A DNA stretch of 64,000 bases from Klebsormidium nitens (Eukaryota; Plantae; Klebsormidiophyceae), in the NCBI GenBank assembly GCA_000708835.1, contig DF236989.1:186001-250000 (forward strand), written 5' to 3'. Below, in pieces: positions 14,201-28,920 of this stretch (the first letter of the stretch is position 1; the number at the start of each line of letters is the position of its first letter). The notes under the pieces were generated by a model, which was not told where the DNA came from, searched no databases, and saw nothing but the letters and a program-made list of their open reading frames with translations. The position numbers and the translations under genes are program-made.

Positions 14201-15737
14201 CCTCCCAGTCTGTGGCAGCCGGGTAGGTGACATCAGCGGGCGCTCCCTCTGCTGTATCCGTGCTTTCTGCCAAGGGGGTGAGTGCGCTGGGCGTGAAGAA
14301 TGGGTTGGCCTTGCCGAACTGGAACGTGAAGCCGTCTGCTCCGTTCTGGGGGGGNNNNNNNNNNNNNNNNNNNNNNNNNNNNNNNNNNNNNNNNNNNNNN
14401 NNNNNNNNNNNNNNNNNNNNNNNNNNNNNNNNNNNNNNNNNNNNNNNNNNNNNNNNNNNNNNNNNNNNNNNNNNNNNNNNNNNNNNNNNNNNNNNNNNNN
14501 NNNNNNNNNNNNNNNNNNNNNNNNNNNNNNNNNNNNNNNNNNNNNNNNNNNNNNNNNNNNNNNNNNNNNNNNNNNNNNNNNNNNNNNNNNNNNNNNNNNN
14601 NNNNNNNNNNNNNNNNNNNNNNNNNNNNNNNNNNNNNNNNNNNNNNNNNNNNNNNNNNNNNNNNNNNNNNNNNNNNNNNNNNNNNNNNNNNNNNNNNNNN
14701 NNNNNNNNNNNNNNNNNNNNNNNNNNNNNNNNNNNNNNNNNNNNNNNNNNNNNNNNNNNNNNNNNNNNNNNNNNNNNNNNNNNNNNNNNNNNNNNNNNNN
14801 NNNCAAAGGGATTGCTGCTTGCGGTGGCCCCCGGGAGGGAGGCCGTCCGTGGCACGGGGGGGGCTGCGAGGCCGTCTCCTTGTCGCTGCCCGCTTAGGGT
14901 CGCAAAGAGCTTGTCAATGGAGTCGGCAGCAGGGGCAGAGGCACGCATCGGGGACGACCGCCGTGCAATGGGGGGTATGCCTGAGCTGCTGGGGGTACCC
15001 CCCCTGGAGGCGAAGTCGGTGGATCTATTTACAGGGGGGCCGTGGAACGACGAAGCGGAGGATGCCAGAGAAGCGGGCTCCGACCGGGCCTGGCCAAAAT
15101 TTGGTGGCAAGTGCGGGGAGTCTGACAAAATGGGGGATGGTAGGGGGGGCAGGCTGGACGGATCTGCTAAAGGGGGGGCATCTCTGCTGAGGGGGGGGAG
15201 CGGGCTCTTGGAGCGCACCCGGGACGGAGGGGCAATTCCCACCCCATTGGAAAGGGTTATTGACTGCTCATTAGGGTTCCTCGGCGCAGCCTGACTGCTT
15301 AAGAGATCGTCCCTTGAGCTCAGCATACTAGGAGGCAGCGAATGAGACGTCCGAGAACTAGGCGTGTGCGCAACGTCGTAGCTCCGCCTGACCGCCTCAT
15401 CGCGGTACCCCGGGTACGCGCCGGTGCTCTGATTCAAGGGGGTGCTCCCATTTGCACTCAAGAAGGGATTGCCGGCAGGGGGGCCAGCCAGAGGCACTGA
15501 GTCGCTGAGCAGATCAAGCGCGGCAAACGACTGGACCCCCTGTTTTGGCGCATCCTGAACAGGGCTTGTCGCGAGCGGGAAGAGAGACGGCTCGGAGCGT
15601 CTCCTCCGAGGAGGGCCTTCCGGTGGCGGGGGCAGGACGACCTTGCTTTTGTGAAAGTGGGGCGTCGGTGCTGCTTCTGGTGGAGGGGGGTCCAATCCCC
15701 AGTCGCCTAGATCAATCAGCGGACGAGATCCTGCCAT
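8220..15737 (-). CDS. Type II inositol polyphosphate 5-phosphatase with WD40-like repeats (plant 5PTase12-15/FRA3 class), long low-complexity N-terminus and C-terminal Ig/MSP-like domain
   Basis: Minus-strand exons 15737-13478 (spans N-gap), 12816-12570, 11865-11055, 10650-9596, 8970-8220; phases consistent. Catalytic motifs WLGDFNYR and PAWCDRIL; GTWNVNE, GLQEVEMG, SDHKPV; WD-like repeats (DLWTGSESG, VWSGHSDGKARAW, VWIGYADG). Confidence 0.93.
12746..13140 (-). repeat. Three tandem copies (141 and 147 bp apart) of the intron 3' end plus start of 5PTase exon 2
   Basis: CGCGTCGCTCGGCCAGCACTTGA(T/C)GTTGCCGCTCTCGGAGCCCGTCCA..G.TCGCCTGC and ATGAGTAACTAGA each recur three times. Confidence 0.95.
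14355..14803. other. Assembly gap (N run) inside 5PTase exon 1
   Basis: Run of N; both flanks read in the same ORF frame. Confidence 1.
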
Positions 15738-16918: not shown

Positions 16919-19316
16919 ATGGCTAGCACGTCCGCTGCACCCCCTGCAAGCTTGGAAGGGAATGAGGAGGTCGATGCCGAGAAGCATCCCTCAGGAATCA
17001 TCCCAACTTTACAGTGAGTGCGGATGCTAGCACTTGTTGAAAGCAATCAGTTTGCAAGCTGTTTCTCCAAATCCTCGGAATTGAGGATTGGCCTGAATGC
17101 GTCGTTACTGTGGTTCAACTGAAGCGTTAAGCTCTGACAGCAGCACTTGTGCTGAACAAGTTCATGCAGTCTAAGAGATGAAGAATCTTTAGGGTTTTTG
17201 GTCTGACTGTCCTGCATCTGGTCTGACTGTCCTGCATCACTCGTCCAGGAATATTGTAGCCACGGCGAATATGGGCTGCCAGTTGGACCTCAAGGCCATT
17301 GCCATGCAGGCGCGCAATGCTGAGTACAATCCAAAGGTGAGCGCAAACTCTGCATAGGGTGTTGTCAAACAGCATTTGTTAACATCTGGGGTCATGCCCA
17401 GTTTACTCCAGTTGGAAGCTCTAAGAAGATCAATTGTTTTGTTACAACTTTGTACCGGAGGGTCCGGCTTGTGCAGTGGTTGGTTGCTCAGTATGTTTGG
17501 ATTCGCCAAAGAACGGTGTTTGTATCCTCACCTTACTCCTGTCGAACTGGCCCAGATTGTCTCAGAAGGCAAAGACACTGAAGAATGTCAGCGAAGCTTG
17601 CCCTTAGTTTAGTTTTGGTTTATGGTGGTCTCAAACGTGAGCAAAATTGGATTGCACGCTCCTTGCACGTTTTGAATCTTGGAGGCGTTGCGCAAGCATC
17701 TGCGCATCCCACGCAAAGAGAACGACCGTTTGCTGGAGCTTCCGCAAACTTTTGACAGTGCGTTCGTGGATATTGTGCAGCGGTTTGCTGCCGTGATCAT
17801 TCGGATACGAGAGCCAAAAACGACGGCCCTGATTTTTGCCTCAGGCAAGATGGTGAGTCACCAGTGTCTCAACTGAGTGATGTTTGGGGCAGCAGGTGTC
17901 CCTGCTACCCCAATCGATGCTCGCTCTTTGAATCAACTTCCGTATGTTCCTAATTTCTGGGCCGCTTGATTGACAAAAGTGGTTGACAAGAGGCAAACTT
18001 CAGAGCAAGCTGAACAGCTCGTCATGCAATCGAAGACGTCAGAAATTGCTTGAAAGCACTGGTGCCGCAGACCTGTCTAGCGCCGATAGCATGATGTGGA
18101 GAAGGCCTCGTCTGTTCGTGGCGGTTTGTGAGGGGTTTGTGCAGACGCGCTGCATAGCGATCAAGCCCGTAGCTCAGTGCTTTTGATGTATGCGTTGATG
18201 ATCTTCAAGCAGTGTTCGGACGATTTTAACGGGTATGAGCAGTTTTGTCGTTCAACTTCGAAAACGTAGTTGCCGTTGCAGGTCGCAGTCGGACCCGTTG
18301 AGGATCGCTTAGCCGCTCGTATCTGTCCTTTTGCAGGTGTGTACTGGCGCAAAAAGCGAGGAGAATGCCAGGACTGCCGCTCGGAAAGTGAGTTTTGTCT
18401 GCTTGCAAATCCTGGTTGTCTTGCTCGAAGGCCTTATGACGTGATCGAAGAGAGGATGTCTTCACTGCTTTTAGGAGTGCCTGCCTTTCGCTTCTTTGTC
18501 CCCTCCCCTCTCTTCCCCCTTCCTTGTTTCTCTGTTGCTACTTTCTTGAACGCATCTGAGTGAGGGGCTTTTTTATACTCACTGGCTCGTTTTGCCGTCT
18601 GCTGCAGTACGCAAGAATCGTCCAAAAGCTCGGGTTCCCCGTCACCTTCAAAGTGAGACTCCCTGCTCTTATCTCTGTTCTATTTGGCTATTGTGCTGTC
18701 TGCTTATAAGAATTCCAGAAGGATCTATCGACCTTCTGGAAGTCCAATCCTTATCCAAATTCTTGACTGCTTGCATCTTTTAGGAGGTTCCAAAGTTGGA
18801 CACATCCGCCTTCCCTCAGATCGACTCTTGCACATTTGCAACAAAGGCGTGTACCCGGATTCGTTGCTTGCAATGATCGATCATCCGATGCCCATGATCT
18901 GATGTAGAATTGAAGCATGCATTGCTGTCGTTTTGCAGGACTTCAAAATCCAAAATATAGTTGCGTCCTGTGACGTCAAATTTCCCATCCGATTAGAAGG
19001 TCTAGCGTACGCCCATCAGATGTTTTCAAACTACGAGCCGGAGCTGTTCCCTGGTCTGATCTACCGGATGCGGTCTCCAAAGATTGTCCTCCTTATCTTC
19101 GTGTCGGGCAAAGTCGTTCTCACGGGCGCCAAGCAACGAGACGAGATTTACAAGGCTTTCGAAAATATCTACCCAGTTCTGAACGACTATAAAAAGCAGA
19201 TGGGGCCAGCGCCACCCGGTGCTCTTAGCCCGGCAGATGCCCAAGCTAGGGTTGCGGCCACGAGTCGGCCAAGCCCGAGTGAAAAACCACCCGAACCAAT
19301 GAGAATCCAACAATAG
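16919..19316 (+). CDS. TBP: TATA-box binding protein, 242 aa, with a C-terminal extension
   Basis: Exons 16919-17013, 17249-17336, 17781-17852, 18337-18387, 18608-18652, 18939-19316. Core [15 protein letters not shown]...[35 protein letters not shown]...[22 protein letters not shown]...[13 protein letters not shown]. Confidence 0.98.
17200..17238 (+). repeat. 20-bp tandem duplication GGTCTGACTGTCCTGCATC(T) containing a CTGAC branch-point-like motif in TBP intron 1
   Basis: Directly visible just upstream of the acceptor at 17248. Confidence 0.9.
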
Positions 19317-20430
19317 TGAAGTTCTTAACAACCATGATGTCTAGGGCTGTAAAGCTGCTATTTGATGCGTCTCTTTTCAAGTTGCAATGAGACCTTGTTA
19401 CGAATTTCTGATCAATGGACAGTCTTGGGCCTTCTGCTCGAACACTGTTGGGGATGTTTTTCCTACACTTCACTGCTTCCTTGTTTGTGCAATCATTCTT
19501 GACCATCTTGTTTCGGCTTAACTTTGAAATCCTAAAGTTCGCCCTAGCCTTTGTCTTCAGGCGCAATCTAATATTCCTTTGTAGGAGACGTCGCAACTGT
19601 AGGAAGCTAGATGTTTCTGTAATGTTGCACGTCTCCATTCCTTATTGATAGCCTAGTCTACCGAAGGATATGTTGGAGCCGCACGAAAGTGATAGTGCAT
19701 GTCAAAATGGTAAGTCAGCATAGACCGTCTTCAGCTCATGTTTAGTCGAACTACGAGTGGTCCGGACGTCAAATATATCATGAAAGATCAAAAATCAACA
19801 ATTCGGCGTCCTCTATCATAATGATGTAGCCCGGCTGATTTCAGTAACGGTGTTTGCAATAACGATATTGGGTTTTGCATGAAGTCCGTGACTTTGCTGA
19901 GCGGGCCGTCAGGACGATGAACTAGGCTTGGCAAAGATTCTATCTGGGTACTGCTTGAAGGTGCAAATTAATCGTACAAGAAGCGAACGGCTACGATTGC
20001 ATCGAGGATGTTACTGTATTGCACGTTTGAAGCCGTTCATGGTCCTGCTTGTGTTTTGGATCGACGGCTAACATCTCACATGGCTCGGGCACAGCAGCAC
20101 AGTTGACACTGCCTGAGAAGCTGGGTCTCAATATTATCCAGTACTACTCTGAACAAGAGTGTCAAGTTCTAGCATGCACTGCAGGCGAGGAATCTCGATG
20201 GTATCCAGCTGGCAGGGCTTGACCTGCTCGTCTTCCAAGTTCCTCGTTCTTCTGCCATCAGTGGCATTGGCATTGGAACCTAGCAAGGCGTTGAACTTGA
20301 AGAGACGCGCACCCCATGGTGGTTGTCCTCCTCGGCAGTGCTTGTCGGTAGTCTCCCCTCGCCATTTTGCCTCTAAGCTTTATTTCAAACCTGAAAGAGG
20401 GCTTCGGGAGATCTACCGACGAAATCCACG

Positions 20431-20683
20431 ATGAGTCGCCCAGTTGCACAGCGCACCCTGGGGCTGATCCACCGGTCGCTTCAGCAGGGACGAGCCGGTT
20501 CCTTTCTCCGCAGAGCCGCGGTTGCTGGGGAAGGATCGGGGGGGGCTGACAATGCTTCCCAGACCAGGAACCGGGAGCATCCCAACAGAAGGTTGCCGAG
20601 CCTGGGCGGCGCTTCGTTGCTGGCAGGAGCCTTGACGACGGGGGTGGCTGTGCATGTATTGGCTGAGGCGCCACCTCGCTCAG
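20431..20683 (+). CDS. First exon: Arg/Ser/Leu/Ala-rich mitochondrial presequence-like peptide followed by a hydrophobic segment
   Basis: MSRPVAQRTLGLIHRSLQQGRAGSFLRRAA... then GGASLLAGALTTGVAVHVLAEAPP; donor TCAG|GTGATC at 20683/4 in phase 1 matches the acceptor at 22557. Confidence 0.6.
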
Positions 20684-23600
20684 GTGATCATCATTGAAAA
20701 GCTTTGTCTGGCTTGCCCTCCCTGCTTGTACACAATCTGCCAAACTATCTATCATGATTGAGTGACTCAGGAGCAGCTTATCTATTGACGCCTTATAGAT
20801 ATGCCACATTTTCCTTTCTGGATCAGTTTCGGCACCTTTGGCTGCTTATTCTTCACAGAGGGCTTTGGCCGTCTTGATGTGCATTGTGAGTGAGTTTACA
20901 ATGAGCTTCAAGGAGTTGGAGTGTCACAATGCTGGATCCCTGCGAGAGTTTAAGTATTCTCAAGCAAGGCAATGTACTGCTTTCAACTTCGAAGCCTGCA
21001 TGCAAATCTTCCTTCTTGATCAGAGAGAAGCTGCTGGTGAATACTGCACCTTTACCATGGCTTCATCATAGATGCGCTCGTGCATCAGTGCCATTGCTTC
21101 TACAGTCCTTTACTTGCTGCCTACATGGTTTTCGAGCTGCACACTTAGAGGAGATGTGCGCTAGACTCTGACATGTCTGCATCAAGCTTGCAATGTTGTT
21201 TGATCGGTGCAATTTGGTGACTTTGCAGGTATTGTTTTTGCCCTAGTCCACAAAGTCCCCTGGCTGCATCTTTCTTCTGCGCTCTGCTATTCCTTTTGTT
21301 TTGACCGTGTACAAGGGATTTCGGATGTGAAATCCAGATCCTGCTTCCACAAATCTTTAGGAGTTGATCAGGTACGTGAGACAGATTAGGTCTTGATAGT
21401 TGAGTTATATCCTTGGTTTGCCAGAAGTCCATCTCTTAAAAACAACTGCCTTTTATATTGTCCAGACAGTGGCTTCCATTGATGCTCTTGGAGTAATGGC
21501 TCGTCCATCATTTGTCCATCATCATCAAAACTCCCCATCTCTGATTTTCAGCACTGCCTCCTATGATTGACCAGCTGTTTGTTTGAAGATATTGAAAACC
21601 AGATTAAGGTCGATGCAAACGCAAGGTCTGTGGGGTGGCTGAAATACGAAGCAACCTTTGTAATTTACCCCAAAGCAGTCTGGTGCATCGTCTAGTTCAT
21701 TACCTTCGCAAGTTCGACAGAATATCAGGAACTTTCTGCTCCCTGATTCCTTCCAGAAATCTGAGTAATACTTTAACTCAGCAGTGGGCATCTTGATGTT
21801 GTCGCTCAATCTCTCTTTGAATCTGGTTTGGTGTCTCGAGTCTTTTCCATAGGAACCATAATTTCCAAGCATATTCTTTGAACCTAGACACAGCTCAGCA
21901 TTGTGTAGAGACAGTTCAGCATTGTATAACACAAGCTTGTGCTTTTACCTCTCTGGTTGTGTGCCTTTCTCCAAGACTCTCAAAGGAGTCATTGGCACTA
22001 TTGCTACCAGGATTGAACGGATCTCTTTAGCAACTTTTGACTGCCAGTGGTGCTATGTTGCAAGCCACCTTACTTCGTACTTGTTTTTGTCGTGTCAAGT
22101 CCCTTTACAACATCTTCTGAGTCTCCAGAAGGTCCACTTAAAAGTCATTCTCTTCACCGTATCTTGTCCTGTGGCAGTCTCTTCGAATTCCCCTTTTCTG
22201 CCCCTCCTCAGAGATTTTGTGCAATTTTGAAACATCGTCTCCGGCCCCTCTGAAGGGGCTTATCGCTCGGAGAAACAACTGATTAAGCATGTTGTAAAAG
22301 CTGCTCGTGTGTTCCTGTCACACCACCACTCCTCAGATTCTGTGCAATCGCGTCAGCATATCCTTTTCCTTCAGAAGAGACGCTCACTTTTTTTTAATCG
22401 TATTTTTTTAAAACATTTTGTCAAAGCTGCTCTTGTACTTCCGTCACAGATTCTGTGCCATCTTCAAGTTTCTGCACCCTCCCCAGAAAGGGGGCTTACT
22501 TAGGCACATAACTTTAGGAGCATTTTGTAAAAGCTGCTCGTGTGCTTCTGTCACAGACGGCGGCGCTGAGCCAGAGGCCCCCCCAGCAGAAGAAGATGCC
22601 GATGATTGCCCTTTCTGCGCTTTCATGAAGGCAGGCCCCTGCGGGCAGGCCTTCCGCGACTGGGAGAAGTGCGTGGACACCGCAAACAAAGACGAAGAGG
22701 ACATTGTGACCAAATGCACGGGCCCGACCCGTGCGCTAAAGGAGTGTATGGAAGCCAATCCCGAGTATTATGCCCCGGTATTGGATGCAGATGACGCAAA
22801 GGAAGAGGGGGCACTGGCTGCGGAGAAGCCGGCTGGTGGCGAGGGGAGCGCGAGGAAGGAAGCTGCGCGCAAGGCTGAGGTGAGTGTCCTGGCGAATTCT
22901 TGATTTGCCCAATGTTTGGTTGTGTGTGCTTTGTCAAGAGTTTGACTTCTGCTCCTGGTTTTCTAATTCAAAGGGTGCAAGTGCATCTCCTCTTTGTTTC
23001 AAAGAAGATGTGACAGCGTAGGCTGTGTGTTCGATTACCGGGGTGGCTGATATGGGGAGAATCAGCGTCAGGGAAGTCGAACTTTAGTGTTTGTATAATG
23101 ATTTGTTGGATGGGCTTAGCTTACTGTTGCTGGGGCAATAGAATTTCTGATTGAGGGGGCCGAAATATACTGGAGTTGGTTACGTCACACTTATAGATGT
23201 GGCTGCAACAGGCTGGTTGGTCACAGAATGATACTATCGTTCTCTGAAGGACTCTGTTGCAAGTAACTGGAAAACAGAAGTTTAGGGCCAGTTTCTCTCG
23301 GTTTAAGCTTAAGAGTCGTCTAGGCGTTTGGTCTCTGGATGCATATTGTAATTGACTTTCGAATTTGCAGTGTCCATCTTGCTTCGTATTGCAGTCGCTA
23401 CGGCTGATTGCAGTCACAGTTGTTTTTGCGATATTGGCCGACTTCTTGAGGTAGTTTTGTTTCTGAGGCTGATTACGTTGGGGTCAACGTCTCCTTTCCC
23501 AGTTGGAGTCGTGGGGAGCATTCCTTGAAGAGGCCACGTCTCTTCTCCAGGCAGCGGAGGCCACCGTCGTGAGCAAGGTGGTCGGTGCCAAGGACTCCGT

Positions 23601-26600
23601 CGTCGAGAAAGCGACCGAGCTGAAGGACGCCGCTGTCGAGACGGTTCACGATCTGGAGAAGCGCGCATCGGACACAGTTCACAATCTGGAAAAGCGCGCC
23701 TCGGACACAGTTCACAATGTAGAGAAGCGCGCGTCGGACGCGGTTCACTTGGTTTATGACAAGACGAGCGAGACGCTCGGCGGAGCGAAGGAGTCAGCGG
23801 TGAGGGCGAAAGAGACGGCGGAGGGAAAGGCCTTGCAGGCGAAGGAGGCAGTCGTTGACAAGGCTGAGGGAGTTAAGGAGGGAGCGAAGCAGGCGGCGGA
23901 CACGGCCTCCGAAACGGTGCAGGGGGCGAAGGAGAGTGCGAAGGAGACTGTTGGGAAAGCACAGGAGAGCGTCAAGGAGACGGCTGAGAAGGCGAAGGCG
24001 ACCGCGAAAGAAACGGCGGATAAGGCTTCCGAGAGGGTGCAGGGGGCCAAGGAGAGCGTGAAGGNNNNNNNNNNNNNNNNNNNNNNNNNNNNNNNNNNNN
24101 NNNNNNNNNNNNNNNNNNNNNNNNNNNNNNNNNNNNNNNNNNNNNNNNNNNNNNNNNNNNNNNNNNNNNNNNNNNNNNNNNNNNNNNNNNNNNNNNNNNN
24201 NNNNNNNNNNNNNNNNNNNNNNNNNNNNNNNNNNNNNNNNNNNNNNNNNNNNNNNNNNNNNNNNNNNNNNNNNNNNNNNNNNNNNNNNNNNNNNNNNNNN
24301 NNNNNNNNNNNNNNNNNNNNNNNNNNNNNNNNNNNNNNNNNNNNNNNNNNNNNNNNNNNNNNNNNNNNNNNNNNNNNNNNNNNNNNNNNNNNNNNNNNNN
24401 NNNNNNNNNNNNNNNNNNNNNNNNNNNNNNNNNNNNNNNNNNNNNNNNNNNNNNNNNNNNNNNNNNNNNNNNNNNNNNNNNNNNNNNNNNNNNNNNNNNN
24501 NNNNNNNNNNNNNNNNNNNNNNNNNNNNNNNNNNNNNNNNNNNNNNNNNNNNNNNNNNNNNNNNNNNNNNNNNNNNNGGATAAGGCTTCCGAGAAGGTGC
24601 AGGGGGCCAAGGAGAGCGTGAAGGAAAGCGCGAAGGGCGCGGCTGACAAGGCCTCCGAGAAGGTTCAGGGTGCGAAAGAGAGCGCTAAGGAGACGGCTGA
24701 GAAGGTCAAGCAGACCGCGAAAGAGACGGCGGACAAGGCGTCTGAGAAAGTGCAGGGTGCGAAGGAGAGCGTGAAGGAAAGCGCGAAGGGAGCGGCTGAC
24801 AAGGCGTCCGAGAAGACGGAAGAAGCGAAGCAAGTGGTGAAGGATACGGCAAACAAAGTGGCGGAGAAAGCGCAGGGGGCCAAGGAGAGCGCCAAGGCGA
24901 CTGCACAGGAGACAGCGGATAAGGCGTCGGAGAAAGCGCAGGGGGTGAAGGAAAGCGCGAAAGAGACTGTTGACAAGGCTGCAGAGAAGGCGCAAGGTGC
25001 CAAGGAAAGCGTCAAGGACACCACGAAGCAGGCGGCTGGGAAAGCGCAAGAGACGAAGGAGAGTGTCAAGGCCGGCGCAAAGGAAACGGCTGACAAGGTC
25101 TCTGGGAAAGCGCAGGAAGCGAAGGAGAGCGTCAAGGCCGGAGCGAAGGAAACGGCCGACAAGGTTTCTGGCAAGGCCCAGGAAACAAAGGAGAGCGTGA
25201 AGGAGACGGCCGACAAGGCGTCGGCGAAAGCTCAGGAGCATAAGGAGTCGGTGCAGGAAGCGACGGGCAAGCCTGGGGAGGGCGCAAAGGGTTCGCAGGC
25301 GGTTGCCCGTACGAGCGCCAAGGCGGCGCAGGATTGGATCGTGGACCGAACTGAGGATGCCAAAGAAGTGGTGATCAGTGGTAAGGAAGCCGTGATGGGG
25401 AGTGGACGGACGGCGAGCGATTGGGTGAATGCGGCGGCAGTGACCGTCGCGGGGGCGGCGGAGAGTGCCAAGGAGAGCGTCAAGGGCGCGGTCGGCGCGG
25501 GGAAGGAGAAGGCGGAGGAGGTTAAGGATGGGGTTAAGGAGAAGGCGGAAGGGGCGAAGGAAGCGGTTAAGGAGACGGCGGAAGATGTGAAAGAGACGGT
25601 TGAGGACAAGGCGGATGAAGCAAAGGAGGCTGTGGGCGCGTCGGAGGGAGAGGGAGGATCGGACGGCGGAGATGAGGCGGCGGGAGAGGCGGACGGTGGA
25701 GATGACGCGCCAGAGGAGGAGGAGGAGCCCGAGAAGAAGATTACAGTGAGTCTCGGGCTTCTGTATCAATCCTAACTTGCGGCGTTGTGCCTCTCTGGGG
25801 TTTGGGATGCTGTCTTCTTGACCCGGCTTGTTTCGAGAAGCAGTAGTCTTTGCAACCGACCCCTTAAAAAGTGCGTTTGCTAGACGCAAAACCTGCTTAG
25901 TACTCCGATCGGTCTCCATCTGCGCTACATCTGAAAGGGGCTGAAAAGTCTTGATGACTTAGTCTACTTTCTGTCGCTCGTGAATAAAACAGTCTCTTCT
26001 CTTTCTCCAACGTGAAAACGCTGTTGAAAAGGCTAAGCAGGGTACTGTTGTAGGAACCGATGTAAGAAGACGCGTGTGAAGGCTACGCAATTACCATGAT
26101 GCTCTCAGTCAATCACATCGGTAATGTCCAGAAGTGACAGCTGCTCTTTCTGGTGCACTTAAAAGACCGACGGTACAAGCGTTGATTATGTTCGCCCCGT
26201 CGAAAGTTGCTCCTTATCATGTCAAGGGCTCGCCTCTGCTCGTGTTCAAATTTCGATTGTTCTTTCTGCAGATCGAGGACATAAAGACTGCTCCCATGGA
26301 CTACCGCTTCCCAACCACCAATCAGGTGCGCATCGTACTTTTCAGCCCTCATCGTGAAAGTTCTTCACGTCCGCACTTGCCGCATTTCCAGCCTAGAAAG
26401 CCGATTTGCCGAACACAAGACATGAAGAGAGATTGTATTGTTGGTGGCAGAACAGAGGAGAATCTGGTGAAAGGCACACTTCTTCGGCCTCTCTGGCAAG
26501 GCTATCAGTATTGTCGGAGATCACACGCTTCGAGTTTTGCACAGGCTTTCAACTATTGCTTCAAGAAAGTCTGGGCCAGGTTTCGCCGGCCAACACATGC

Positions 26601-27795
26601 ATTGGATTCTCTGCCAGCAAAGCAGTGGCGCACGCAGAGTCACGGGTGTCCATTATCAATGCGGCTGAGACCCTCAAACCTTCCAGGCTCGGACCCCCCC
26701 GTAGCCTTCGCAATTGTTTCTCAAACACGTGTATTTTTCTGTGTCCAGGCCAAGCACTGCTACACCCGGTATAACGAGTTCCACAAGTAAGTGAACGGTC
26801 AAATGTCTCTTCGGTTCCGAGATTGAAAAACCCTTCATAATCAAGCTTCTGATGCGACTCTTGCGACTTTCGAATGGTGAAGAATGTGTCAAACCTTCAC
26901 GACGGGTTCTTCAGTTTCGAAAGTCGATGGTCGTTTGTGGTCATCATATTTCAATCTTTCATGAAAGTGAGCGGACGTAAGTCATTGGTTACGATATTGT
27001 GAGGGGTTGACATCCGCGTTATCAATCTCAAAATCGAGTGCAACGCACGTGAGTCAGTACCTTTCCGTGGAAGGCAGGCGAAATGCTCGTTCAAAGTTTT
27101 TTTGAAACAAAAACTCACGAGCGCATGTGCGGTGACAGGTGTGCGGCCCAGAAGGGCGAGGACGACCCGGAGTGCAAGCAGTACCAACGCTGGTACCGCT
27201 CACTGTGCCCAGGAGAATGGGTAAGTTCGTCTACTTCCGCTCGTCCACTCCCGTTCGATCCATACTGTGAGTGTGGAAACTTTTGCGTGAGCCTTTCAGC
27301 TTACTGCCACGTAATCCTTCTGGGATTCCCCTAGCAACATGCGCGCGTTTCTCATGACCCTTTCTGTTCCGAGTGTTTCGACGATCGTTTCCGATGCTCC
27401 CTCTCTTCTTTTTTGAAACCCTATTGCTAGGACACTGATCAAACGATAGAACGTCTGTGGCATACTCGAATGACTTTGGCCCCGGTTCTGACAACCTGCC
27501 TGATCACAAGGTTGGACTTCTGATCAGGAAAGTATGGACTGGTATTTGGCGGCTGTGTGAGCTCAATAGAGAATGGTCATTATAGAATCCGAGGTGTCGG
27601 GCCTTTAACAAGTAAAGTTGGGCTTCAATTATGCAGAATATCTGGAAGAAGCTTTGAATTGCAACTTTTGACTTCTCAAGGACTTTGAAGTGTGCGCTTA
27701 CATTCAAATAATGAAACATCTGCATTGTGTTCTCTGACCAGGTCGAAAAGTGGAACGAGCAGAGGGAGGAAGGCACGTGGGCGGGTCGGTACTGA
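20431..27795 (+). CDS. COX6B: Putative chimeric mitochondrial protein: presequence + TM anchor, GCK (twin CX9C) domain, LEA-like repeats, COX6B (about 1000 aa, gap-dependent)
   Basis: Exons 20431-20683 (phase 1), 22557-22879 (1/0), 23503-25745 (0/0, contains N-gap), 26272-26325, 26749-26786, 27139-27220, 27742-27795 (TGA). All junctions are GT-AG and phase-compatible. The LEA exon has no in-frame ATG of its own before the gap. The COX6B identity is secure; the single-transcript model is inference. Confidence 0.62.
22200..22556 (+). repeat. Three degenerate ~110-125 bp units, each ending in the acceptor-like AAAGCTGCTC.TGT..TT..GTCACA(G/C)
   Basis: Units end near 22322, 22449 and 22556; the last is the used acceptor of the GCK exon. 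Confidence 0.8.
22557..22879 (+). CDS. GCK-domain (Mia40/CHCH-like twin CX9C) exon
   Basis: CPFCAFMKAGPCGQAFRDWEKC...KCTGPTRALKECMEANPEYY: CxxC, GxC, and two CX9C motifs; acceptor TCACAG at 22556, donor GAG|GTGAGT at 22879/80. Confidence 0.85.
23503..25745 (+). CDS. Group-3 LEA-like Ala/Lys/Glu repeat exon ending in an acidic linker
   Basis: Repeats such as QGAKESVKESAKGAADKASEKV (22 aa), QGVKESAKETVDKAAEKA (18 aa) and TVHDLEKRASD x3 (11 aa); acidic tail EEEEEPEKKIT; acceptor TTTCCCAG at 23502, donor ACA|GTGAGT at 25745/6. Confidence 0.85.
24065..24577. other. Assembly gap (N run) inside the LEA repeat exon
   Basis: Run of N between near-identical repeats; the flanking reading frames differ by the estimated gap length, so the size is approximate. 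Confidence 1.
26272..27795 (+). CDS. COX6B: Cytochrome c oxidase subunit 6B domain (4 exons)
   Basis: IEDIKTAPMDYRFPTTNQ|AKHCYTRYNEFHK|CAAQKGEDDPECKQYQRWYRSLCPGEW|VEKWNEQREEGTWAGRY*; CX9C plus CX10C pattern and conserved plant COX6B intron layout. Confidence 0.96.
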
Positions 27796-28429
27796 GCGGG
27801 TCCGTACGCATTCAGTATACTGCAGAGAACCGCTGTCCCATGGAGAGTGATGTGGTCAGCATCACGTGCGGGACTAAGAGGTCATCTATACCTTTTTGAA
27901 ACGTCGACTTTTGTCAAACTTTGAAAGCGCTAGCAAGCATAGGCATCACGCATAAAAGACCTCATCGCCTACAGCAATATGTCCTTCACACACCGTCAGA
28001 TAAACCTGGTCTTCACGACTCAAACCCCCGTCCGTGTTACTCTGTCTTGATTTACCATGTCACGGCCAGCGTCACCAAACCCCTAAATCAGTGTTGATTG
28101 AGGACCCGATGCAAGCCTAGCCGCCCCGTTTCACAGTCCAAAATTCTTCTGGTTTCGAAGGCACTTACACGTCTAAATGGCCGGCCCATGTTTCATGAGC
28201 ACGCGCTGAGTTGATACAAACGATGATCATCCATGGCGGGTCCGATCACAAACGTGCAACACTTGCCAATCTGGATCGAGCTCTCGACGAAATGGTTTCC
28301 AACCGGAATGCTTCCAACAGCTCCCGACAAAGGCATCACAAACCTGAATAATCAAGGTGATACAGCGGCCATGGCGGCTGCCGGGCTCGAAGTTGTCGAA
28401 TTGATGCACTGGCCGCGGCTGAGAATTGA

Positions 28430-28920
28430 CCCATTGCATGCATGCATGCTTTGAATCGGAATGCATGGACTCGCCAGTCTAATATGACCGTCCACAGCGC
28501 AACTTTAATTCATCCGCGACTTGCTTGCACCGTGCCAGAAACAGATGCCAAGTGACTGCTGCTATGTGCATATATCAGATCGACCCCGATCGATTGCGTT
28601 CCGCGATGCATTGTCATCCTACTCAGTTCGAATGATTGACAGCCTGAGCCGCCGCATCAGGAGATAGCCTTGCACCATATCCTGGTCGAAACATTGGCTT
28701 CAGAACTTGCAAATAAGAGTGAGTCCGTGACCCTTGCCAGGGGCGGCGCATACCGTACCTAGCACTTCAACCGCGCCGCCGCGCGGCCGCGCCTTTCTCT
28801 ATCCCGGCCGCCCGCGACCCCGGCGCGAGTGCGTGCCACGTCATCAGCACCGCTCGCCATGCATATTTTGGCTGCGCCCAGTCGATCACGCGTGCATGCT
28901 GCATGCAAGTACGAGATGTA
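28430..28920. promoter_or_regulatory. Cluster of RY (CATGCA) repeats with CCACGTCA and ACGCGTG elements upstream of the 29564 gene
   Basis: TGCATGCATGCATGC near 28436, GCCACGTCATC near 28834, CCATGCAT near 28857, CACGCGTGCATGCTGCATGCAA near 28887. Motifs are seen; function is inferred. Confidence 0.3.

Follow-up and report, generated by a model that had tools for sequence, protein, structure and literature searches.

A Probable Seven-Exon Gene of Klebsormidium nitens Joining a Leader, a GCK Domain, an LEA-Like Repeat Array and COX6B

Gene Model of the Locus

The stretch of Klebsormidium nitens DNA analyzed here covers 64,000 nucleotides (contig DF236989.1 of assembly GCA_000708835.1, positions 186,001 to 250,000) and is called the window. 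On its forward strand, between 20431 and 27795, it carries seven coding exons that probably belong to one nuclear gene for a composite precursor of the mitochondrial intermembrane space. The initial annotation of this DNA had proposed such a single fused gene, and the comparison of three diverged loci supports it at the level of sequence. The exon model was rebuilt by script after direct reading of positions 19800–28600. An exhaustive GCK search gave three exon-like open reading frames (ORFs) with 75–88% identity, and their contigs were compared with the window: L001 (Logan SRR23617307, 25.9 kb), L002 (partial), and L003 (a 97 kb metagenome contig of the Joint Genome Institute, JGI). The features of the locus are as follows.

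20309–20430 (+): conserved 5′ flank (promoter/5′ untranslated region, UTR); the blastn block 20309–21085 corresponds to L001 4555–5357
20431–20683 (+): exon 1, leader exon, ending in phase 1
20684–22556 (+): intron 1, 1873 nt, holding a conserved non-coding block at 20865–21085
22557–22879 (+): exon 2, with acidic spacer, GCK and Ala/Glu/Lys tail, ending in phase 0 at the donor GAG/GTGAGT
22880–23502 (+): intron 2, 623 nt, at the junction of GCK and repeat exon
23503–25745 (+): exon 3 (repeat exon), spanning the gap and ending in phase 0 at the donor ACA/GTGAGT
23503–24064 (+): exon 3 left of the gap, with the conserved start LESWGAFLEEA followed by 11-residue repeats; 84% identity to L001 residues 1–176
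24065–24577 (no strand): assembly gap inside the repeat array, written with an estimated length of 513 N
24578–25745 (+): exon 3 right of the gap, with 22/18-residue repeats, a non-repeat stretch with two DW motifs, further 11-mers and an acidic linker
25746–26271 (+): intron 3, 526 nt, at the junction of repeat exon and COX6B
26272–26325 (+): exon 4, encoding IEDIKTAPMDYRFPTTNQ, where the COX6B domain begins
26749–26786 (+): exon 5, COX6B, with the first Cys of CX9C
27139–27220 (+): exon 6, COX6B, with the second Cys of CX9C and the CX10C pair; 96% nucleotide identity to L001
27742–27795 (+): exon 7, COX6B C-terminus, with the stop codon TGA at 27793–27795
27796–28021 (+): conserved 3′ UTR; blastn matched 27715–28021 to L001 11322–11646

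AG/exon/GT borders were found at all junctions, and the phases after exons 1–6 are 1, 0, 0, 0, 2, and 0 if the gap keeps the register. The rebuilt model thus agrees with the initial annotation, which had listed seven exons with canonical GT-AG sites and these phases. Left of the gap, exon 3 has 187 sequenced codons and no Met, as had been noted earlier, and an in-frame TGA (23470) lies 10 codons before its acceptor; it is therefore unable to start a protein alone. The end of exon 3 (ATTACA/GTGAGT) joins in frame to IEDIKTAP of COX6B, so the earlier reading of a strong donor landing in frame on this sequence was correct. By rough arithmetic, an ORF would show a phase 0 GTRAGT hexamer among its final ~12 codons in ~0.5% of cases at each junction. 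Read-through past the exon 2 donor meets a stop after 7 codons, and read-through past the exon 3 donor gives 9 sense codons with a stop in the tenth. Because stops follow soon after both junction donors, each junction, judged on the window alone, could be an intron or a gene end. The predicted product has ~830 aa should no sequence be missing in the gap, and otherwise up to ~1000 aa.

Orthologous Loci and Selection

The seven pieces recur in L001 and L003 with order and strand unchanged and without gaps. Splicing by the same sites gave ORFs that are intact, 836 aa long in L001 and 825 aa long in L003, and the exon lengths differ by multiples of three only. All 12 splice sites are conserved among the window, L001, and L003. 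Across the three species the exon 2 donor reads GTGAGT, GTAAGG, and GTAAGG, and the exon 3 donor GTGAGT, GTAAGT, and GTGAGT; the exon 1 donor CAG/GTGATC is also conserved. A donor weight matrix trained on 12 sites was overfitted to the exon-side bases and was not used as evidence.

The synonymous divergence (dS) was ~0.25–0.7 between the window and L001 and ~1.0–1.2 between the window and L003. The ratio of nonsynonymous to synonymous divergence (dN/dS) was 0.19 for exons 1–2, 0.08–0.10 for the repeat exon (left part 0.10, right part 0.078), and 0.02–0.05 for COX6B. These values indicate that every module is under purifying selection.

One Gene or Several

A competing explanation is that three independent genes lie in tandem on the same strand, namely a ~200-aa GCK gene, an LEA-like gene and a short COX6B gene, each with its own promoter and poly(A) site, and that their phases agree by coincidence. 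It would suit the normal size of GCK proteins, the stops within 7–12 codons after both junction donors in the window, and an AATAAA ~200 nt past the read-through stop of the repeat exon (seen by eye in the window). The Met of exon 4 could also begin a short COX6B. The repeat exon, however, does not behave as an independent gene. It is coding from its first codon, with three synonymous changes in codons 1–3 and the low dN/dS given above, yet it has no Met over ~375–440 codons in each of the three species. Because it is constrained from codon 1 and has no start codon, it requires an upstream coding exon that ends in phase 0. Exon 1 cannot feed it, since exon 1 ends in phase 1.

The beginning of exon 4 gave a similar result. 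The 8 codons before its only Met show 6 variable sites among the three species; 5 are third-position sites and 4 are synonymous, the others being I/V and E/D exchanges. By our own arithmetic, the binomial p for 5/6 third-position sites is ~0.02. The same codons carry the family motif IKTAP. Because they vary like coding sequence and carry this motif, translation appears to enter exon 4 from upstream, which is not expected of a COX6B gene beginning at the Met. The in-frame ATG at 26188 was considered as an unspliced COX6B start and rejected, as an in-frame TAA interrupts this stretch in L001, 7 codons before the acceptor.

Read-through after the exon 2 donor extends over 7 (window), 22 (L001), and 35 codons (L003), and after the exon 3 donor over 9, 4, and 16 codons, with unrelated tails in both cases. 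GTRAG is kept at both junction donors in three species while the sequence beyond it is randomised, which counts against three genes. Global identity to L001 was 0.51 for intron 2 and 0.47 for intron 3, and the undisputed introns gave 0.51–0.58; the two junction introns have thus diverged about as far as the others. The sole conserved block of intron 2 (23468–23493) adjoins the acceptor. Candidates for hidden start exons in introns 2 and 3 were enumerated in the three species, and none was conserved in position or peptide. In Smith–Waterman (SW) comparison with L001, the 250 nt before the ATG scored 36 (shuffles 9.3 ± 1.3) and the sequence after exon 7 scored 99 (shuffles 9.6 ± 1.1). The first 250 nt after the exon 2 donor scored 10, which is the shuffle level, and the sequence after the exon 3 donor scored 17, a weak value inside the range of ordinary introns (10–21). 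UTR-like conservation is, at the level of sequence, confined to the two outer ends of the unit. With three genes, each intron of 526–623 nt would have to accommodate the 3′ UTR of one gene together with promoter, 5′ UTR and start exon of the next, and no conserved first exon, promoter-like block or UTR-like block was observed in introns 2 and 3. We regard three tandem genes as highly improbable.

In intron 3, a 25 nt block (25872–25896) is shared with L001 only and has no ATG.

Alternative processing of the same locus deserves somewhat more weight, although it too is unlikely. Here the locus would mainly give a GCK-only mRNA ending in intron 2, a short COX6B mRNA starting in intron 3 and translated from the Met at 26296, or both, and the fusion would be a minor conjoined isoform. 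The early stops after both junction donors, the internal Met conserved in all three species and the intron 3 block common to L001 would agree with it. On the other side, translation of the strongly constrained repeat exon would remain unexplained unless the splice from exon 2 to exon 3 is used, the would-be internal ends show no UTR-like conservation, and the 8 codons before the Met look coding.

Several points weigh against a single gene, or against parts of its interpretation. GCK proteins are usually 130–250 aa long with the domain close to the C-terminus, and exons 1–2 with the 7-codon read-through would make a normal-looking GCK protein of 199 aa. The exon 4 Met could start a normal COX6B of ~66–67 aa from an internal promoter. 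The conservation is backed by only ~2.5 independent lineages, because L002 is close to L003, and the gap could conceal a defect in this particular genome. The hydrophobic segment of exon 1 is only moderately hydrophobic, and the repeat failed the threshold of Pfam LEA_4. Protein searches that used the repeat exon, its unique tail or the tail of L001 gave low-complexity bacterial and plant matches only; this is weak evidence, as the 590-aa ORF of L001 itself was missed too. The spliced-junction pattern had no matches in metagenome contigs, which is also weak, since an exon 6 control that matches L003 gave none either. Exact protein look-ups with the 67-residue COX6B from the internal Met and with the exon 1 and exon 2 ORFs of the window found none on record. 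With these points considered, a single gene that joins leader and hydrophobic segment, GCK, long repeat and COX6B remains the supported architecture on comparative sequence evidence.

Assembly Gap in the Repeat Exon

The assembly gap lies within exon 3, and in its written form (513 N) the reading frames of its two sides disagree by one base. On the left, 24064 is a first codon position, and on the right a codon starts at 24579; a hidden length of 1 mod 3 is therefore required, and 513 equals 0 mod 3. The gap edges are near-identical repeat copies, with 1 mismatch in ~46 nt and the same codon register. On the gap-free repeat exon of L001, the left flank maps to residues 1–176 and the right flank to residues 162–569 (86% identity for the right part). 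Both flanks reach residues 162–176, where L001 and L003 are uninterrupted. Because the left side ends and the right side begins at these residues, both gap edges lie on one motif copy. Either the contig ends overlap and the exon has 561 codons, or the genome has extra repeat units, and the frame is kept both ways. In total, 576 codons of the repeat exon are sequenced, and the orthologous exons have 569 and 549 codons.

The off-by-one frame and the position of the gap in a repeat array might suggest that its two sides come from different loci, so that GCK with the left repeat and the right repeat with COX6B are not neighbors in the genome. The initial annotation had named such a mis-scaffold among the findings that would refute the fusion. 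The edges share the same motif and codon register, and the flanks map collinearly to one exon in two orthologous loci (L001, with L003 in the same order). A mis-scaffold is therefore very unlikely on this sequence evidence, and we give it next to no weight.

Leader and Hydrophobic Segment

Exon 1 encodes a presequence-like N-terminus (residues 1–33, nt 20431–20529), with 6 K/R and a single D/E among its first 35 residues; the earliest acidic residue is residue 34. It is followed by a moderately hydrophobic segment, GASLLAGALTTGVAVHVLA, at residues 60–78 (nt 20608–20664), where the Kyte–Doolittle maximum of the 19-residue mean is 1.59. L001 and L003 keep these features, with 6–7 K/R and 1 D/E in the first 35 residues and a hydrophobic 19-mer mean of 1.4–1.6. 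The pattern of a bipartite signal, a positive N-terminus followed by a hydrophobic segment, is thus present in all three species. The presequence and transmembrane segment claimed earlier are predicted features conserved across these species: the presequence-like start stands, and the hydrophobic segment is there at moderate strength.

GCK Domain and Its Likeness to Mia40

The exon 2 product matched Pfam GCK (PF07802) with 92.4 bits against a cut-off of 27.2 (E = 2.4e-26) at nt 22604–22810. It contains CPFC followed by twin CX9C. In a 38-sequence alignment the GCK family shows six invariant cysteines, which are those of CxFC and two CX9C pairs, and exon 2 has 13/13 of the invariant columns, including CxFC, G, the two CX9C pairs and YY. 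GCK is placed in the CHCH/CX9C clan (PMC11836899).

Exon 2 aligned to human MIA40 (2k3j) with E = 2.9e-6, CPFC lying over CPC and the twin CX9C in register. The core of the GCK domain in the AlphaFold model (residues ~20–70) had a predicted local distance difference test (pLDDT) score above 90. Foldseek gave 2k3j as the top PDB match of this core, with a probability of 0.98 and a root mean square deviation of 2.3 Å over 53 columns, and with a weak E-value (0.24) for this small domain; yeast Mia40 (3a3c) was the fold match at rank 5. The Mia40 CPC motif itself is absent, as exon 2 has CPFC, with CxxC spacing, over CPC-L. The earlier comparison with Mia40 stands for the twin CX9C in sequence, is favored by the predicted fold with its weak E-value, and fails for CPC.

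Among named GCK relatives, those of streptophytes are the closest. A long C-terminal extension is absent from all of the 150 best GCK representatives. Two GCK proteins of other streptophyte algae, P0022 (680 aa, from Mesotaenium) and P0059 (570 aa), combine a start that resembles a presequence with a hydrophobic segment and a long acidic spacer, which indicates that the anchored-GCK layout predates this locus or recurs beyond it. Another protein, P0039 (537 aa, from an ENA contig), carries GCK at its C-terminus, behind ~430 Ala/Glu/Gly/Val-rich residues that weakly match Apolipoprotein; another lineage has thus combined GCK with an amphipathic array in the opposite order.

LEA-Like Repeat Array

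The repeat is rich in Ala (20–22%), Lys (16–17%), and Glu (15%), and its autocorrelation peaks at 11, 22, 18, and 40 residues, giving an amphipathic and hydrophilic array of 11-residue units. The hydrophobic moment was maximal at 98–100 degrees (z of 6–9 against shuffles, about 9 for the right part). LEA_4 (PF02987) scored 20.4, 21.0, and 23.5 bits in the window, L001, and L003, below the cut-off of 51.1, and the scores on Apolipoprotein and YtxH were similar or better. We call the repeat LEA-like because it has periods of 11/22/18, an A/K/E-rich composition and a helical moment, yet stays below the LEA_4 threshold; by sequence it is an amphipathic LEA-like array whose LEA_4 membership is not proven. 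The initial annotation had spoken of ~750 aa of LEA repeats. Period, composition, amphipathicity and great length agree with that description; the LEA_4 assignment fell short, in contrast to the profile matches of GCK and COX6B, and the figure itself had counted in the estimated gap. An acidic linker (25611–25745) with a net charge of −15 over 45 residues precedes COX6B.

COX6B Domain

The 75 residues spliced from exons 4–7 matched Pfam COX6B (PF02297) with 77.2 bits against a cut-off of 26 (E = 1.1e-21), covering profile positions 2–65 of 66. The domain is complete, as the initial annotation had held, and both cysteine pairs, HC-x9-C and EC-x10-C, are present. The sequence IKTAPMDYRFPTTNQ, which fits the motif TAPxDxRFPxxNQ, is conserved in three species, and the internal Met at 26296 (MDYRF) is the same in all of them. 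No second copy of COX6B or GCK was found in the window or the fetched loci.

Intron 4 (26326–26748, 423 nt) has no stop in the exon 4 frame in the window. In L001 it has 3 stops and its length is not divisible by three; in L003 it has 15 stops. Because of these stops, the open frame is most likely due to chance.

Comparison with Known Systems

The long plant COX6b-1 proteins (Arabidopsis AT1G22450, 191 aa; Vigna radiata 7jro_g, 181 aa) likewise have a complete C-terminal COX6B behind an N-terminal extension. The Vigna protein was the best solved-structure match of the window COX6B (E = 1.1e-31, chain residues 110–179). In Arabidopsis, the 191-aa COX6b-1 is a long form found in the larger complex IV band (PMC5877523). 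N-terminal extensions are tolerated on plant COX6B. The extension of plant COX6b-1 has ~110 residues and no recognised domain, whereas the one predicted here has ~760–930 residues with leader, hydrophobic segment, GCK and repeat. No sequence similarity was found between the repeat or linker and the COX6b chains in the PDB, including the Vigna COX6b-1 extension.

With Mia40/CHCHD4, the GCK exon shares the register of the twin CX9C, and its best predicted fold match is 2k3j, at a weak Foldseek E-value. The order of leader, anchor, spacer and CHCH domain in the window protein is presumably like that of yeast Mia40. The two differ in that Mia40 has CPC and the window CPFC, and the window domain belongs to Pfam GCK and not to the Mia40 family.

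The repeat resembles group 3 LEA proteins and pea LEAM in its 11-residue period, its A/K/E/T-rich composition with almost no aromatic residues or Cys, and its strong amphipathic moment. LEAM is a mitochondrial matrix protein of pea that protects the inner membrane in the dry state. Unlike LEA_4 proteins and LEAM, the repeat scores below the family cut-off, is predicted in the intermembrane space and not the matrix, and is not free-standing.

Composite precursors that carry several units behind one targeting signal include yeast Arg5,6 and Atp25, Schizosaccharomyces pombe Rsm22-Cox11, and rice RPS14 (PMC8734313). They are cut in the matrix by MPP, the mitochondrial processing peptidase, at internal presequence-like sites (PMC8734313). 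Unlike in these composites, the modules of the window protein are predicted in the intermembrane space. Presequence-like segments were not found at its internal junctions, as judged without a dedicated predictor: the linker before COX6B has a net charge of −15 and the GCK/repeat junction is of mixed charge. Because of the charge of this linker, any cleavage would need a protease other than MPP.

Proposed Topology and Function

Stop-transfer signals, or bipartite signals for the intermembrane space, are built from a presequence with a hydrophobic segment behind it, and fungal Mia40 has this design too. From the order and sequence of the modules, we infer targeting, topology, docking, and protective and redox roles as follows. 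The predicted precursor would consist of an arginine-rich presequence, a hydrophobic stop-transfer/sorting segment, an acidic spacer, GCK, the repeat, the acidic linker and COX6B. The presequence would engage TIM23 and the hydrophobic segment would arrest in the inner membrane, so that all modules past it would reach the intermembrane space. This compartment fits, because it is the only one that oxidises both CHCH-type modules and in which COX6B binds complex IV.

The GCK module, with a predicted CHCH fold and the invariant CxFC where Mia40 has CPC, may act as a thiol-redox or metal-handling unit close to the COX2/CuA side. The repeat module, an amphipathic LEA-like helix of at least 560 residues with an 11/22-residue period, would shield membranes and proteins, and the COX6B end would dock on complex IV. 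Any cutting of the protein would be performed by an intermembrane-space or inner-membrane protease. A mature protein that stays in one piece, anchored in the membrane, with the CxFC/CHCH module and a 560–750-residue array, and with its COX6B end plugged into complex IV, much like the tether that the initial annotation had inferred, is possible but rather doubtful.

Neighboring Features

Upstream of the gene, positions 18933–19316 (+) encode the C-terminal repeat of the TATA-box-binding protein, the last exon of the upstream neighbor (91% nucleotide identity to L001 2903–3229). The block in intron 1 (20865–21085, ~220 nt) has ~70% identity to intron 1 of L001, and tblastx found no consistent coding frame in it; it may have a regulatory role within the first intron. 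On the opposite strand, 20258–20809 (−) holds a 183-aa ORF with an ATG, antisense to exon 1 and without a family match, which probably just reflects the GC richness of the coding strand. Rfam gave no matches. A second assembly gap (14355–14803, 449 N) lies outside the gene.

Biological Meaning

The initial annotation knew of no such architecture. Our limited searches agree with this, as the 150 best GCK representatives included none with such an extension and a limited literature search found no paper linking COX6B and LEA in a fusion. If the gene model is true, a respiratory-chain subunit is permanently or transiently fused to an LEA-like protectant and a Mia40-like domain. In the mitochondrial matrix, protection of the LEA type is known; an array in the intermembrane space on complex IV would be a new way to harden respiration against drying. 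If the mature protein stays in one piece, this terrestrial streptophyte-type alga would have a protectant and a redox module built into its cytochrome c oxidase.

The fusion may also bear on the origin of the long N-terminal extension of land-plant COX6b-1. With a mature protein in one piece, the gene-fusion (‘Rosetta stone’) argument would link the uncharacterised GCK family of plants to the biogenesis or the protection of complex IV. The fusion, if true, would be the first functional lead for a plant-wide family that is almost unmentioned in the literature, and it would place GCK proteins probably in the intermembrane space near cytochrome c oxidase.

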